Positions 25,801 through 52,800 of a stretch of 64,000 nt of DNA are shown in pieces. The notes below the pieces were generated by a model. It was not told where the DNA came from. It worked only from the letters and a program-made list of their open reading frames with translations, and ran no database searches. The DNA comes from Macrostomum lignano (taxonomy: Eukaryota). The stretch lies in contig NIVC01002615.1 in assembly GCA_002269645.1 (NCBI GenBank), forward strand, positions 1 through 64,000, read 5' to 3'. Made by a program: the position numbers and the translations under genes. Position 1 is the stretch's first letter, and each line of letters starts with the position of its first letter.

Positions 25801-28800
25801 GGGCCTCGCCGCTGTGGGAGCCGAGCTCCCGGTCAGAGTGTTGGTGGAGTCGAATTCTACTGCTCCCACGGGGAAGATTGCGCTCAGCATCACCGAGGTG
25901 GCGTTGGTTGCCGTCACGCAGACCTGCGGTCAAGGCGGTGGTTGGCGAGCGGCCTTGATTTACAGACAGACAGACAGACAGACAGACAGACAGACAGACA
26001 GACAGACAGACAGACAGACAGACAGACAGACAGACAGACAGACAGACAGACAGACAGACAGACAGACAGACAGACAGACAGACAGACAGACAGACAGACA
26101 GACAGACAGACAGACAGACAGACAGACAGACAGACAGACAGACAGACAGACAGACAGACAGACAGACAGACAGACAGACAGACAGACAGACAGACAGACA
26201 GACAGACAGACAGACAGACAGACAGACAGACAGACACTAAGACAGACAGACAGACAGACAGACAGACAGACAGACAGACAGACAGACAGACAGACAGACA
26301 GACAGACAGACAGACAGACAGACAGACAGAAAGACAGACAGAAACTAAGACAGACAGACAGACAGACAGACAGACAGACAGACAGACAGACAGACAGACA
26401 GACAGACAGAGGGACAGACAGACAGACAGACAGACAGACAGACAGACGGACAGACAGACAGACAGACAGACAGACAAACAGGCTCACCTGAGTCACGCCA
26501 GCCGATCTCCGGCAGCCTCCAGCTGTAAGATCCACAGTCAGCGCCCCATCAGAGCCGGTGGTGATCCACTGCCCGCCGCTGTACGTCATGTTCGTGAAGG
26601 TCAGCGACTGCTGCGGCAGCTGGTCGGAGTGCCAGCCGACCTCCAGCGGTCCAACGCAGACTGGCCGAGCAACGCAGCTGCTGCTCACGGGATCGAAGCA
26701 ACCGCGAGCTTCGGGGAAGAACTTGAACTGGCCCTCACTGGAGTGGAACAGCCCCTCGGGCTGGATGGCCAGGATCGCCAGTTTTCTGTTGACGGTGTAG
26801 CAGAATACGTCATATATATTGCTCGCCGAGACATTCTCGGAGCCAGGGAACTCCAGGATGGTGCCCCTGTAGTCGATGAGCTCCCCGATCTTCATCCGCT
26901 TGAAATTGCCCGCCGTGCAGACCTGACGGACAGGGAGAGTTGATGGGATCAAAGTTTTGGGATCTGGGATTATTTAAAATTTGGGATCTGGAATGTGGGA
27001 TCTAGGATTTGTGATCTAGGATTTAGGATATGGGATGTGGATCTGGGATTTTGGATCTGGGACTTGGGATCTGGGATTCGGGATCTGCGATTTGAGATCT
27101 GGGATTTGGGATCTGCGATTTGGGATCTGGGATTTCGGATCTGGGATTTCGGATCTGGGATTTCGGATCTGGGATTTCGGATCTGGGATTTCAGATCTTG
27201 GATTTGAGATCTGTGATTTGGGATCTGGGATTTCGGATCTGCGATTTGGGATCTGTGATTTGGGATCTGCGATTTGGGATCTGGGATTTAGGATCTGCGA
27301 TTTGGGATCTGGGATTTCGGATCTGTGATTTGGGATCTGCGATTTGGGATCTGGGATTTGGGATCTGGGATTTGAGATCTGTGATTTGGGATCTGGGATT
27401 TTAATCTCACCTGCGTTACAGTCGGAGCTGTTCGGCAGCCGTCCGCAGTCAGGTCGGCGAGAAAGGTGGCAGCCGCTGTACCATTTGAGGTGACGTTTAT
27501 GACGATGCCGTCAGTGCGGCTCACTTTGGCGTTGTAGAAAAAGTCGACTGGAAGGATGCTGATTTCCGCCAGGGCGTTGCCGGTGACGCAGGCTGGAAGC
27601 GGATCGGGAATTGAGCCTGCTCAGTACACATCAGTTCACCAATAGATCACCTACTAGCAATCTAGTGCGGCCCCCCTTCGGGGCGCCCAATAAGCACGGA
27701 GCAAAAATAGTTAATGGAAAACGATTAAAAAAGCACATTTTCTTAAACACCAATTCCTTCTTAACTTTTAAAAATCACCCTATTCATGTAAAATTGTCAC
27801 GGACAATGATATTTGCTATGAATCTATTTTTTTCTAAAAATAACAAATATACAACAAAATATAACTTTCACAAAGATAATAGACATTACCCCTAAATAGA
27901 AAATATTCCCAAGACAGCAAGCATCCCTCCAGATAGCAAGCACCCCCTCCAAAAGTAAGCAACCGCAGATAGCAAGCATCCCCTAATACTCGTAGCAAGC
28001 ATCCACCCAGATAGCGAGCATCCTGCAGACAGCAAGCATCCCCCAAATATTGTAGAAGCATCCACCAGATAGCAAGCATCCCCCAAATATTGTAGAAGCA
28101 TCCACCCAGATAGCAAGCATCCCCCAAATATTGTAGAAGCATCCACCCAGATAGCAAGCATCTGCAGATAACAAGCATCCCCCAAATATTGTAGAAGCAT
28201 CCAGCTAGATAGCAAGCATCCCCCAAATATTGTAGAAGCATCCACCCAAATAGCAAGCATCTGCAGATAACAAGCATCCCCCAAATATTGTAGAAGCATC
28301 CACCCAGATAGCAAGCATCTGCAGATAACAAGCATCCCCCAAATATTGTAGAAGCATCCAGCTAGATAGCAAGCATCCCCCAAATATTGTAGAAGCATCC
28401 ACCCAGACAGCAAGCATCCCCCAGATAGCAAGCATCCCCCAGATAGCAAGCATGCACCCAGACAGCAAGCATCCTGCAGATACCAAGCACCCCCCAGATA
28501 TTGCAGAAGCATCCACCCAGTTAGCAAGAATCCATAAAAAGCAAGCATCCCTAGATAGAAAGAATCCCATACATGTAGCCAAGCTTATCAAGCGCAGTAA
28601 TCCTTTGTTTGCCAAGCGCAGTAATCCTTGGTTTATCAAGTGCAGTAAGCCTTGGTCTATCAAGTGCAGTAATCCTTGGTCTATCAAGTGCAGAAATCCT
28701 TGGTTTATCAAATGCAGTAATCCTTGGTATATAAACTGCAGTAATCCATGGTTTATCAAGTGCAGAAATCTTTGACTTATCAAGCGAAGTAATCCTTGGC

Positions 28801-49800: not shown

Positions 49801-52800
49801 TTTGTATCTTTTATGTTTGACATGGTGGCTCTTTAATGTTTGACATGGTGGCTCTTTTGTGTTCTACATGGTGGCTCTTTTATGTTCGATTCGGGGTTTT
49901 TTTAATGTCTGACATGGTGTCTCTTTAATGTTCGACATGGTGGCTCTTTTATGTTTGACATGGTGGCTCTTTAATGTTCGACATGGTGGCTCTTTAATGT
50001 TTGACATGGTGGCTCTTTAAGGTTCGACATGGTGGCTCTTTAATTTTCGACATGGTGGTTCTTTTATGTTGGACATGGTGGCTTTTTATGTTTGATTCGG
50101 GGTTTTTTAATGTCTGACATGGTGTCCCTTTAATGTTTGACATGGTGGCTCTTTAATGTTTGACATGGTGGCTCTTTTATGTTTGACATGGTGGCTCTTA
50201 TATGTTTGACATGGTGGATCTAACATGTTTGACATGGTGGCTCTTTAATGTTTGACATGGTGGCTTTTTAATGTTCGACATGGTGGCTCTTTAATGTTCG
50301 ACATGGTGGTTCTTTTATTGTCTGACATGGTGTCTCTTTAATGTTCGACAGGGTGGCTCTTTAATGTTTGACATTGTGGCTCTTTAATGTTTGACATAGT
50401 GGCTCTTCTATGTTTGACATCGTGGCTCTTTATTGTTTGACATGGTGACTCTTTTATGTTCGACATGGTGGCTCTTTAATGTTCTATAAGGTGGCTCTTT
50501 TAGATTTGAAATGGTGGCTCTTTAATTTTCGACATGGGGGCTCTTTAATGTTCTTCATGGTGGCTCTTTTATGTTTTACATGGTGGCTCTCATATGTTCG
50601 ACATAGTGGCTCTTTAATGTTCTATAAGATGGTTCTTTTAGATTTGAAATGGTGGCTATTTAATGTTTGACATGGTGGCTCTTTAATGTTAGACATTGTG
50701 GCTCTTTAATGTTTTACATGGTGGCTCTTTTATGTTCGACATGGTGGTTCATTTATGTTCGACATGGTGGCTCTTTTATGCTTGACATGGTGGCTCTTTA
50801 ATGTTTGACGTGGTGGCTCTTTTATGTTTTACATGGTGGCTCTTTTATGTTTGACATGGTGGCTCTTTAATGTTTGACGTGGTGGCTTTTTATTGTTCGA
50901 CATAGTGGCTCTTTAACGTTCTTCATGGTGGCTCTTTTATGTTTGACATGGAGTCACGAATATACTTGACATGGGGACTCGTTAATGTTTGACATGGTGG
51001 CTCTTTAATGTTCGACATGGTGGCTTTTTAATGTTTGACATGGTGGCTCTTTAATGTTCGACATGGTGGCTCTTTAATGTTAGACATGGTGGCTCTTTTA
51101 TGTTTGATATGATGGCTCTTTAATGTTTGACATAAAGTCACATATATGTTGGACATGGTGGCTCTTTAATGTTAGACATGGTGGCTCTTTAATGTTCGAC
51201 ATGGTGGCTCTTTAATGTTAGACATGGCTGGCTCTTTAATGTTCGACATGGTGGCTCTTTTTTTCTTGACATGGTGGCTCTTTAATGTTTGACATGGTGG
51301 TCTTTTTATGTTTGACATGGTGACTCTTTTACGTTTGACATGATGGCTCTTTAATGTTTGAGATGGAGTCACATATATGTTGGACATGGTGGCTCTTTAA
51401 TGTTCGACATGGTGGCTCTTCTATGTTTGACATGGTGGCTCTCTAATGTTTGACATGGTGGCTCTTTTATGTTTGACATGGTGGCTCTTTTATGTTTGAC
51501 ATGGTGGCTCTTTTATGTTTGACATGGTAGATCTAACATGTTTGACATGGTGGTTCTTTAATGTTTGACATGGTGGCTCTTTAATGTTCGACATGGTGGT
51601 TCTTTTATTGTCTGACATGGTGTCTCTTTAATGTTCGACATGGTGGCTCTTTAATGTTTGACATTGTGGCTCTTTAATGTTTTACATAGTGGCTCTTTAA
51701 TGTTCGACATGGTGTCTTTTTAATGTTCTTCATGGTGGCTCTTTTATGTTTGACATGGAGTCACGAATATACTTGACATGGGGACTCGTTAATGTTAGAC
51801 ATGGTGGCTCTTTAATGTTTGGCTTGGTGGCACATTAATGTAATAATGGCTCTTTAATGTTTGAAATGGTGGCTCTTTAATATTTGACATGGTGGCTCTT
51901 TAATGTTTGACATGGTGGCTCTTTAATGTTCGACATGGTGGCTTTTTAATGTTTGACATGGTGGCTCTTTAATGTTCGACATGGTGGCTCTTTAATGTTA
52001 GACATGGTGGCTCTTTTATGTTTGATATGATGGCTCTTTAATGTTTGACATTAAGTCACATATATGTTGGACATGGTGGCTCTTTAATGTTAGACATGGT
52101 GGCTCTTTAATGTTCGACATGGTAGCTCTTTAATGTTAGACATGGCTGGCTCTTTAATGTTCGACATGGTGGCTCTTTTATGCTTGACATGGTGGCTCTT
52201 TAATGCTTGACATGGTGGTCTTTTTATGTTTGACATGGTGGCTCTTTTACGTTTGACATGATGGCTCTTTAATGTTTGAGATGGAGTCACATATATGTTG
52301 GACATGGTGGCTCTTTAATGTTCGACATGGTGGCTCTTTAATGTTAGACATGGTGGCTCTTTAATGTTCGACATGGTGGCTCTATAATGTTAGACATGGT
52401 GGCTCTTTAATGTTCAACATGGTGGCTCTTTAATGTTAAACTATAGATCAACAATAGATCAACGATAGATTACCGATAGATCAACGATAAATCAAAGATA
52501 GATCCCCTATAGATCAACAATAGATCAACGGTAGATCACCTATAGATCACCTATAGATCAACGATATATCACCTATAGATCAACAATAGATCAACGATAG
52601 ATTACCTATAGATCAACCATAGATCAACGATAGATCACCTATAGATCAACAATAGATCAACGATAGATCACCTATAGATCAACAATAGATCAAAGATAGA
52701 TCCCCTATAAATCAACGATAGATCAACGATAGATCACCTATAGATCACCTATAGATCAACAATAGATCAACAATAGACCACCAATGGATCACCAAAGGAT

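Follow-up and report, generated by a model that had tools for sequence, protein, structure and literature searches.

How does a chain of transposon-like units, abutting one another without spacer, come to fill the intron of a gene? The question is raised by a 64,000-nucleotide stretch of Macrostomum lignano DNA (assembly GCA_002269645.1, contig NIVC01002615.1, positions 1 to 64,000; hereafter the window), in which one intron of a minus-strand gene holds seven head-to-tail units (U1 to U7) with Helitron-like ends. An earlier note on this DNA had taken the array for one replicated element, with its CTAG|TC junctions as products of rolling-circle replication. Our analysis points to another history: the array probably consists of tandem non-autonomous Helitron-like carriers of satellite repeats that were joined end to end and then expanded by unequal exchange, in two stages.

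The layout proposed before, seven units between 27654 and 52443, stands for the most part: there are seven 3' ends with hairpin and CTAG and six spacer-less CTAG|TC junctions, but the seventh unit lacks a TC head (Table 1). Each 3' end, read on the minus strand, consists of a GC hairpin, 7-12 nt (rather than the fixed spacing of 8 nt described previously) and CTAG. Directly after six of the seven CTAG ends comes TCC(T)ATATACTAAAAATG (TCCTAAATAC in U6), followed by a microsatellite, (GT)n in the case of U1 and (GGTA)n-like in the other five (U2-U6). The conserved head spans ~590-690 nt and includes ...AAAAA(C/T)GGCT...(A/G)AACTTGCAC; the 14-mer CATTTTTAGTATAT occurs six times, against 0.43 occurrences expected. 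From 5' to 3', a unit runs from this head (TC…, the microsatellite and ~600 nt of unique sequence) through a 23-bp minisatellite (24-bp in U1) and an 18-bp minisatellite of the GGGGGATGCTTGCTATCT type to a tail of ~140 nt, which closes with the hairpin, AGATTG and CTAG. Minisatellites make up ~78% of the array region.

To reconstruct how the array grew, we compared divergence among its parts. The heads of U2, U3, U4 and U5 show 0 mismatches in 590 nt, while that of U6 differs by 8.3% and that of U1 by ~15%; the tails of U3, U4, U5 and U6 are identical, while that of U7 differs by 5.7% and that of U2 by 14%. U2 is therefore a young head with an old tail and U6 a young tail with an old head, and the head of unit k diverges together with the tail of unit k+1, as one junction block. 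Sliding comparisons and exact-match chains placed the switch from ~100% identity to the repeat background of ~82% inside the 23-bp array, at 31632/31633 in U2 and at 47118-47125 in U6. A single ~4.2-kb period opens with the final ~200 nt of the 23-bp array, followed by the head; across the junction come the tail, the 18-bp array and the remaining 23-bp array. When the variants of the 23-mer were mapped, U3-U6 proved collinear (…FLI.PQUVT+NO+WHB+KR…AAAE), whereas the patterns differed in the older flanks, i.e., in U2, head-proximal U6 and U7. In a global alignment, U4 and U5 differ by ~11 substitutions besides their single indel.

Breakpoints within repeats, collinear variant maps and indels in monomer multiples form the signature of unequal exchange. 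Rolling-circle replication would instead leave copies of one template in identity blocks bounded by element termini, and this pattern was not found in the array, since head and tail divergence differ within U2 and within U6. Because of this mismatch, and because identity switches inside the 23-mer array, recent unequal exchange, by copying a ~4.2-kb block, accounts for three of the six junctions. On the simplest reading, the older array had four units (U1, earlier forms of U2 and U6, and U7) with three junction types, which are 6-15% apart, and three ~4.2-kb periods were gained recently.

The same pattern disfavors both serial insertions and a rolling-circle concatemer, because the identity blocks are not bounded by CTAG|TC. 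It is very improbable that the whole seven-unit array is such a concatemer of one Helitron, placed by a single insertion at A|T. Spacer-less CTAG|TC junctions do match the junctions of Helraiser circles (PMC4778049), and the rejoined flanks yield a host repeat unit with A|T. However, U1 departs from the other units by 15% in the head and 28% in the tail, has a 124-nt insertion and carries a 24-bp minisatellite of its own, which is hard to reconcile with one replicated element; U2 and U6 are chimeras; the blocks of identity end within the 23-mer array and not at element termini; and the 5' end of the array is without TC, the end that Helitron transposition strictly needs (PMC4778049). The idea of rolling-circle junctions thus survives in part: a Helitron-type joint is needed for at least one of them, but half are copies made by unequal exchange.

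We then considered what kind of element the units represent. Canonical Helitrons have 5'-TC and 3'-CTRR ends and a palindrome of 16-20 nt located ~11 bp from the 3' end, and insert at A/T without target-site duplication (PMC4067079). Here, CTAG (a CTRR) stands at all seven 3' ends, including the true array edge at 27654, and all six heads begin with TCC(T)ATATAC, the position of this terminus being set by its adjacency to CTAG. U2 has a 19-nt palindrome ending 11 nt before the terminus (-10 kcal/mol, z = -4.3), and the U1 hairpin, of other sequence, has a 7-bp stem with one mismatch. Outside the array, a hairpin with CTRR is found at 9 sites, compared with ~9 in shuffled sequence, which is the background rate; judged from that rate, a hairpin with CTRR, an adjacent TC and a T flank would coincide at a fixed site with a chance of ~1 in 10^5-10^6. 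By their ends (TC, CTAG, hairpin and T in the 3' flank), the units fit canonical non-autonomous Helitron-like elements, a match that suggests mobility. They have no coding capacity (element ORFs, i.e., open reading frames, gave no Pfam match), and no Rep-Hel was found within the 64-kb window; any movement would need Rep-Hel protein in trans.

U1 allows a comparison between subfamilies. Its first 17-18 nt and last 10 nt (AGATTGCTAG) are common to the other units, and the hairpin is kept while its sequence differs; between these ends, identity is 85% in the heads, where indels also occur, and 72% over 141 nt of the tails apart from the 124-nt insertion, and the 24-bp minisatellite is unrelated to the 23-bp minisatellite of the other units. 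Conservation of ends and hairpin between diverged units is a point in favor of a genuine mobile family. It also bears on the possibility that the array is a local satellite with a higher-order period, involving no mobile element, in which TC, CTAG and hairpin are coincidental. We regard this as quite improbable, even though the region is mostly minisatellite in a window that is 54% tandem repeat outside the array, recent growth was demonstrably by unequal exchange, and no dispersed copy was found in a protein-space search or two metagenome scans. A local satellite would not account for an array edge lying exactly at hairpin and CTAG | T, nor for two diverged unit types whose terminal 10-18 nt are shared and whose hairpins persist despite their different sequences, and slippage in one array cannot join unit types with unrelated minisatellites.

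The earlier note had also labeled the units as Lep1/HINE-type. HINEs are Helentron derivatives with subterminal inverted repeats (subTIRs) of 11-15 bp, T-rich ends and TT targets (PMC4067079, PMC7492417); their subTIRs lie 2-4 nt from the 5' terminus and 38-60 nt from the 3' terminus. The interior of the units is indeed HINE-like: its left part holds a microsatellite, tandem repeats fill the center and a palindrome lies toward the 3' end, a modular match to published elements (PMC4067079, PMC7492417). However, no terminal or subterminal inverted repeats were detected in the units: when the first 45 nt were aligned with the reverse complement of the last 130 nt, 33-100% of shuffles scored at least as well as the best alignments. 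Just downstream of the 5' end, an inverted repeat of 7 bp in U1 (CATATAC…GTATATG) is weak (p ~0.1), and the other units have nothing above chance. The termini are TCC… and …GCTAG, without T runs, the 3' CTRR has its hairpin ~11 nt away as in canonical Helitrons, and the target is a mixed 11-bp repeat rather than TT or T-rich. Because subterminal inverted repeats and T-rich ends are missing, the label does not fit, and that the units are HINEs, i.e., non-autonomous Helentrons of the DINE-1, Lep1 or Cg_HINE type, is very unlikely indeed; their likeness to HINEs is confined to the modular interior.

A tRNA-derived module in the heads was considered as well, prompted by GGTTCGAATC and a T run, and was rejected: Rfam gave no match at E<=1 and ARAGORN none at >=80%, while at a 70% threshold ARAGORN made intron-spanning calls only. 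Heads of both subfamilies (38830-38870 and 29700-29740, minus strand) carry a tRNA B box-like motif (CCTGGGTTCGAATCTTAGT) with a run of 7-8 T 20-40 nt downstream.

The flanks of the array bear on where it entered. Both belong to one 11-bp host minisatellite. At the left edge the sequence reads …CACCTA|CTAG or, on the element strand, CTAG|T and then host DNA. One copy of the host 12-mer ATAGATCACCTA lies at 27642, and five more lie in the minisatellite at 52444-52791, each of these five with TAGATC directly after it; a junction of 27653 with 52444 thus yields a perfect copy of the host repeat unit (…CCTA|TAGATC) with A|T at the joint. At the right edge, the 23-bp array passes straight into host repeat (…GGCTCTTTAATGTTAAAC-TA|TAGATC…), the boundary being ambiguous or microhomologous over 3-5 nt; with the boundary set instead at 52438, an imperfect direct repeat of 5 nt (AACTA/ACCTA) would remain. 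An A|T target, as suggested before, is thus backed by the T of the 3' flank and by the restored host unit, but not by the 5' boundary, which falls inside a minisatellite and has no TC terminus. Either integration itself or a later deletion removed the 5' head of the outermost unit. Had a later 5' deletion happened to keep the phase of the host repeat, this would be a coincidence of ~1 in 11; the preserved phase mildly favors, without proving it, a host-side breakpoint at the original target.

Unequal exchange multiplies junctions but cannot make the first spacer-less CTAG|TC, so at least one old junction needs Helitron-type end-to-end joining. The junction between U1 and U2, hereafter j1, joins a U1-subfamily head, with its 24-bp minisatellite, to a tail of the other subfamily, an arrangement that cannot be put down to slippage within one element or to replication of a single template. 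In the history that we propose, a U1-subfamily element would first have inserted at A|T within the host 11-bp minisatellite, 61 nt upstream of the splice acceptor, and at least one element of the related subfamily, carrying the 23-bp minisatellite, would have been joined through CTAG|TC to the 5' side of U1. The joint could have arisen when a second element inserted into the A|T re-formed by a resident Helitron at its own 5' boundary, or through terminator read-through or end-joining by the transposase; the Helraiser transposase makes a precise TC/CTAG joint (PMC4778049), and dimer formation by insertion-site preference has been reviewed (PMC12628747). In the second stage, which the divergence pattern shows, unequal homologous exchange between misaligned 23-bp repeats added the three ~4.2-kb periods; deletions and duplications sized in multiples of the repeat then followed.

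For j1 itself, a more specific origin is possible but unlikely: the junction of U1 head and U2 tail may record homing, in which a Helitron-like element inserted at the A|T formed by the host A and the T of a resident element. If so, heterotypic spacer-less arrays would be seeded by serial site-specific insertion and then grown by recombination, and the phase-perfect host joint together with the 5'-truncated unit would hint at an integration route in which transposase joins the 3' end, the 5' end being left to host repair.

Several observations weigh against a history of end-joining followed by exchange. All three old junctions may descend from one ancestral joint through earlier unequal exchange, because head and tail divergence match in the three old junction types (14.5/13.9%, 8.3/5.7% and 17.8/13.1%). 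The 5' edge of the array lies within the 23-bp minisatellite and is no Helitron end; the TC 5' end is defined solely by its place beside CTAG at the junctions; and the hairpin of U3-U7 is a 5-bp GC stem that is not significant alone (z = -0.84). It is from end structure alone that we infer mobility of the family. An 89-aa spurious ORF of the head had no match in protein space, and metagenome scans with a 28-nt invariant head motif and with the 20-nt 5' end returned 0 matches each. Finally, U2-U6 share 100%-identical stretches, so the element could be real and its copy number artefactual, the 4.2-kb periods having been over-expanded or collapsed by the long-read assembler; assemblies of M. lignano are reported to be difficult owing to simple repeats and duplicated chromosomes (PMC5730564). 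We consider such an artefact improbable. The periods can be told apart: U3 has its 1.5-kb deletion, U4 and U5 differ by the 138-nt indel and ~11 substitutions, and U6 has insertions. The old units and three junction types would be unaffected.

End-joining followed by unequal exchange, which we continue to favor, can be set beside known systems. With Helraiser/HeliBat and canonical non-autonomous Helitrons, the units share TC, CTAG, a hairpin ~11 nt from the 3' end and a following T (PMC4778049, PMC4067079). As in these systems, there are no inverted repeats and probably no target-site duplication, and CTAG|TC is the joint of Helraiser circles (PMC4778049); unlike in those circles, the joint here is chromosomal and six-fold, and the 5'-most unit lacks the 5' end that Helraiser strictly needs. 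Tandem arrays of Helitrons are known and usually credited to rolling-circle replication (Xenopus Heli2Xen, PMC12001565; Hydractinia, 10.1101/2024.11.21.624632). They too consist of head-to-tail Helitron-derived units, often with internal minisatellites, but the recent growth of the present array can be traced to unequal exchange in such a minisatellite. Plant centromeric Helitron arrays (Xiong et al. 2016, as summarized in PMC12628747) are described as having many 5' ends and a single 3' end, with truncated units that lack the terminator; relative to that description, the situation here is the reverse, with seven 3' ends and six 5' ends, the outermost 5' end being the one that is missing.

HINE, DINE-1 and Cg_HINE elements resemble the units in having a conserved left part with microsatellite, central satellite-like repeats and a short palindromic right part, and different central arrays within related flanks; both kinds of element seed satellite DNA (PMC7492417, PMC4067079). 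They differ in their subterminal inverted repeats and T-rich ends and targets, in place of which the units have canonical Helitron ends. Oysters and Drosophila offer well-described cases of satellites seeded by satellite-carrying Helitron and Helentron elements (PMC7492417, PMC4067079, PMC12628747). In the transposable-element dimers of McGurk and Barbash, as reported in PMC12628747, a dimer made by transposition likewise precedes recombinational expansion; as reported there, those cases were mainly Drosophila retroelements and P/hobo-type elements, in contrast to the precise Helitron joint, two subfamilies and intronic location seen here.

No other copies of heads or tails, and no further Helitron-like ends or shared repeat families, were found in the remaining ~39 kb of the window. 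A literature search returned no paper describing Helitrons in Macrostomum, and those supplements of the M. lignano genome paper that were searched make no mention of Helitrons. The element family may therefore be undescribed.

The array lies entirely within one intron, with all units in gene sense. The gene has short exons, and the introns between them are each filled by a private minisatellite. When peptides from four exons were searched against 5.8 billion clusters, the matches were three proteins only, P0001 (E = 1.5e-142), P0002 and P0003, all from M. lignano. By tblastn, P0001 and P0002 align collinearly along 59155 to 24085 of the minus strand, and identity in single exons reaches 100%. 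The product is an uncharacterized repeat-containing membrane protein, for which a Pfam search gave no family. In both the P0001 and P0002 models, the exon ending …GCFKAIPAS… is joined straight to the exon at 27411-27592, with nothing between. Together with the donor and acceptor present at the intron ends, these models bear out the proposal that an intron of ~0.44 kb, its share outside the array, was enlarged to 25.2 kb by a sense-oriented array. The mean M. lignano intron is 1.1-1.4 kb (PMC5730564), so that this one is ~20x the mean.

Some further features of the gene were observed. ATTAAA is a common variant polyadenylation signal in animals; it occurs in gene sense orientation in most 23-bp monomers, with 314 copies across the array (27654-52440). 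At aa ~195-215, P0001 follows a different frame (ARLHQRRRRTCRLL) from the open frame that the window (52900-53000) shares with P0002, as would be expected of a paralogue with a frameshift or of a mistake in the older assembly or gene model. At 22914-24164 (minus strand), an ORF of 416 aa stays open on the gene strand through a 9-bp repeat, (GAGCGGAGG)n at 23308-24057, and continues into a predicted transmembrane stretch. The minisatellite at 23308-24057 may thus be coding, as a Ser/Ala/Pro-rich stalk, rather than intronic.

Table 1. Features of the array-bearing intron and its borders. Coordinates are those of the plus strand; the first position of each unit is the start of its CTAG.
Feature	Positions	Strand	Description
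Downstream host exon	27411-27592	-	From translation and tblastn of P0001/P0002; ttccag acceptor before, GTGAGA donor after; ends TVTQ
Intron	27593-52826	-	25,234 nt; GTGAG donor at 52826, AG acceptor at 27594-27593; its two flanking exons are adjacent in both homologous gene models
Host intron remnant, 3' side	27593-27653	-	61 nt; ends in ~1.5 units of 11-bp host minisatellite (…CAATAGATCACCTA, plus strand)
U1, complete, diverged subfamily	27654-30314	-	2,661 nt
U1 tail	27654-27911	-	Hairpin GCCCCGAAGGGGGGC, 12 nt, CTAG|T host
U1 18/41-bp array	27912-28566	-	
U1 24-bp minisatellite	28585-29644	-	
U1 head	29645-30314	-	Begins TCCATATACTAAAAATG, then (GT)n
U2	30315-32426	-	2,112 nt; tail hairpin TGCCCCCCAACGGGGGGCA, 8-bp stem; tail 14% diverged from U3-U6 tails
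U2 18-bp array	30455-30784	-	
U2 23-bp array	30846-31836	-	
U2 head	31837-32426	-	Identical to U3-U5 heads
Recently amplified block	31633-47118	-	~Four periods of ~4.2 kb; both outer breakpoints inside 23-bp minisatellite
U3	32427-35142	-	2,716 nt; U4 minus ~1.5 kb internal deletion; 122-nt tail fused straight to 23-bp array, without 18-bp array
U4, reference unit	35143-39379	-	4,237 nt
U4 tail	35143-35282	-	
U4 18-bp array	35283-35545	-	
U4 23-bp array	35614-38789	-	
U4 head	38790-39379	-	
U5	39380-43475	-	4,096 nt; 99.7% identity to U4 besides one 138-nt (6 x 23) indel
U6, chimera	43476-48774	-	5,299 nt
U6 part near-identical to U5	43476-47118	-	
U6 older-type 23-bp array	47119-48184	-	
U6 head	48185-48774	-	8.3% diverged
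U7, without 5' head	48775-52443	-	3,669 nt (~3,666 nt if counted to 52440); tail 5.7% diverged
U7 18-bp array, doubled	48915-49159, 49465-49716	-	Doubled by 557-nt internal duplication
U7 23-bp array	49717 to ~52440	-	Adjoins host minisatellite directly
Host 11-bp minisatellite, 5' side of insertion	52444-52791		ATAGATCAMC-type, ~31 units
Upstream host exon	52827-53106	-	From translation and tblastn; ends …TVAPTTTI, phase 1; then GTGAG donor

Elsewhere in the window (1-27400 and 52800-64000), almost every intron has a private minisatellite, with ~35 arrays of periods 4-60 bp. These private arrays have no flanking sequence in common and no Helitron-like ends, and were apparently not brought in by the element of the array. 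Long pure tetranucleotide microsatellites were also observed, namely (TGTC)n at 8558-8896 (~85 copies) and (CTAA)n at 9220-9898 (~169 copies), and (ACAG)n is present in two different introns, at 15673-16035 (~91 copies) and 25962-26481 (~130 copies). At 3937-4007 (plus strand), Rfam reports a tRNA that scores 30.8 bits (E = 0.02), just over the gathering threshold of 29 bits; ARAGORN found no tRNA in the window.

The route from transposon to satellite DNA through unequal recombination is already known. What this locus adds is a single-locus record of that change in which two modes of growth can be separated: end joining of the transposition type would have supplied the first period, and the element's internal minisatellite supplied the homology for unequal exchange. 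For annotators, it follows that spacer-less CTAG|TC joints alone are no proof of rolling-circle replication and that divergence across the joints needs checking. The gene, for its part, tolerates an intron made almost wholly of one sense-oriented element family.

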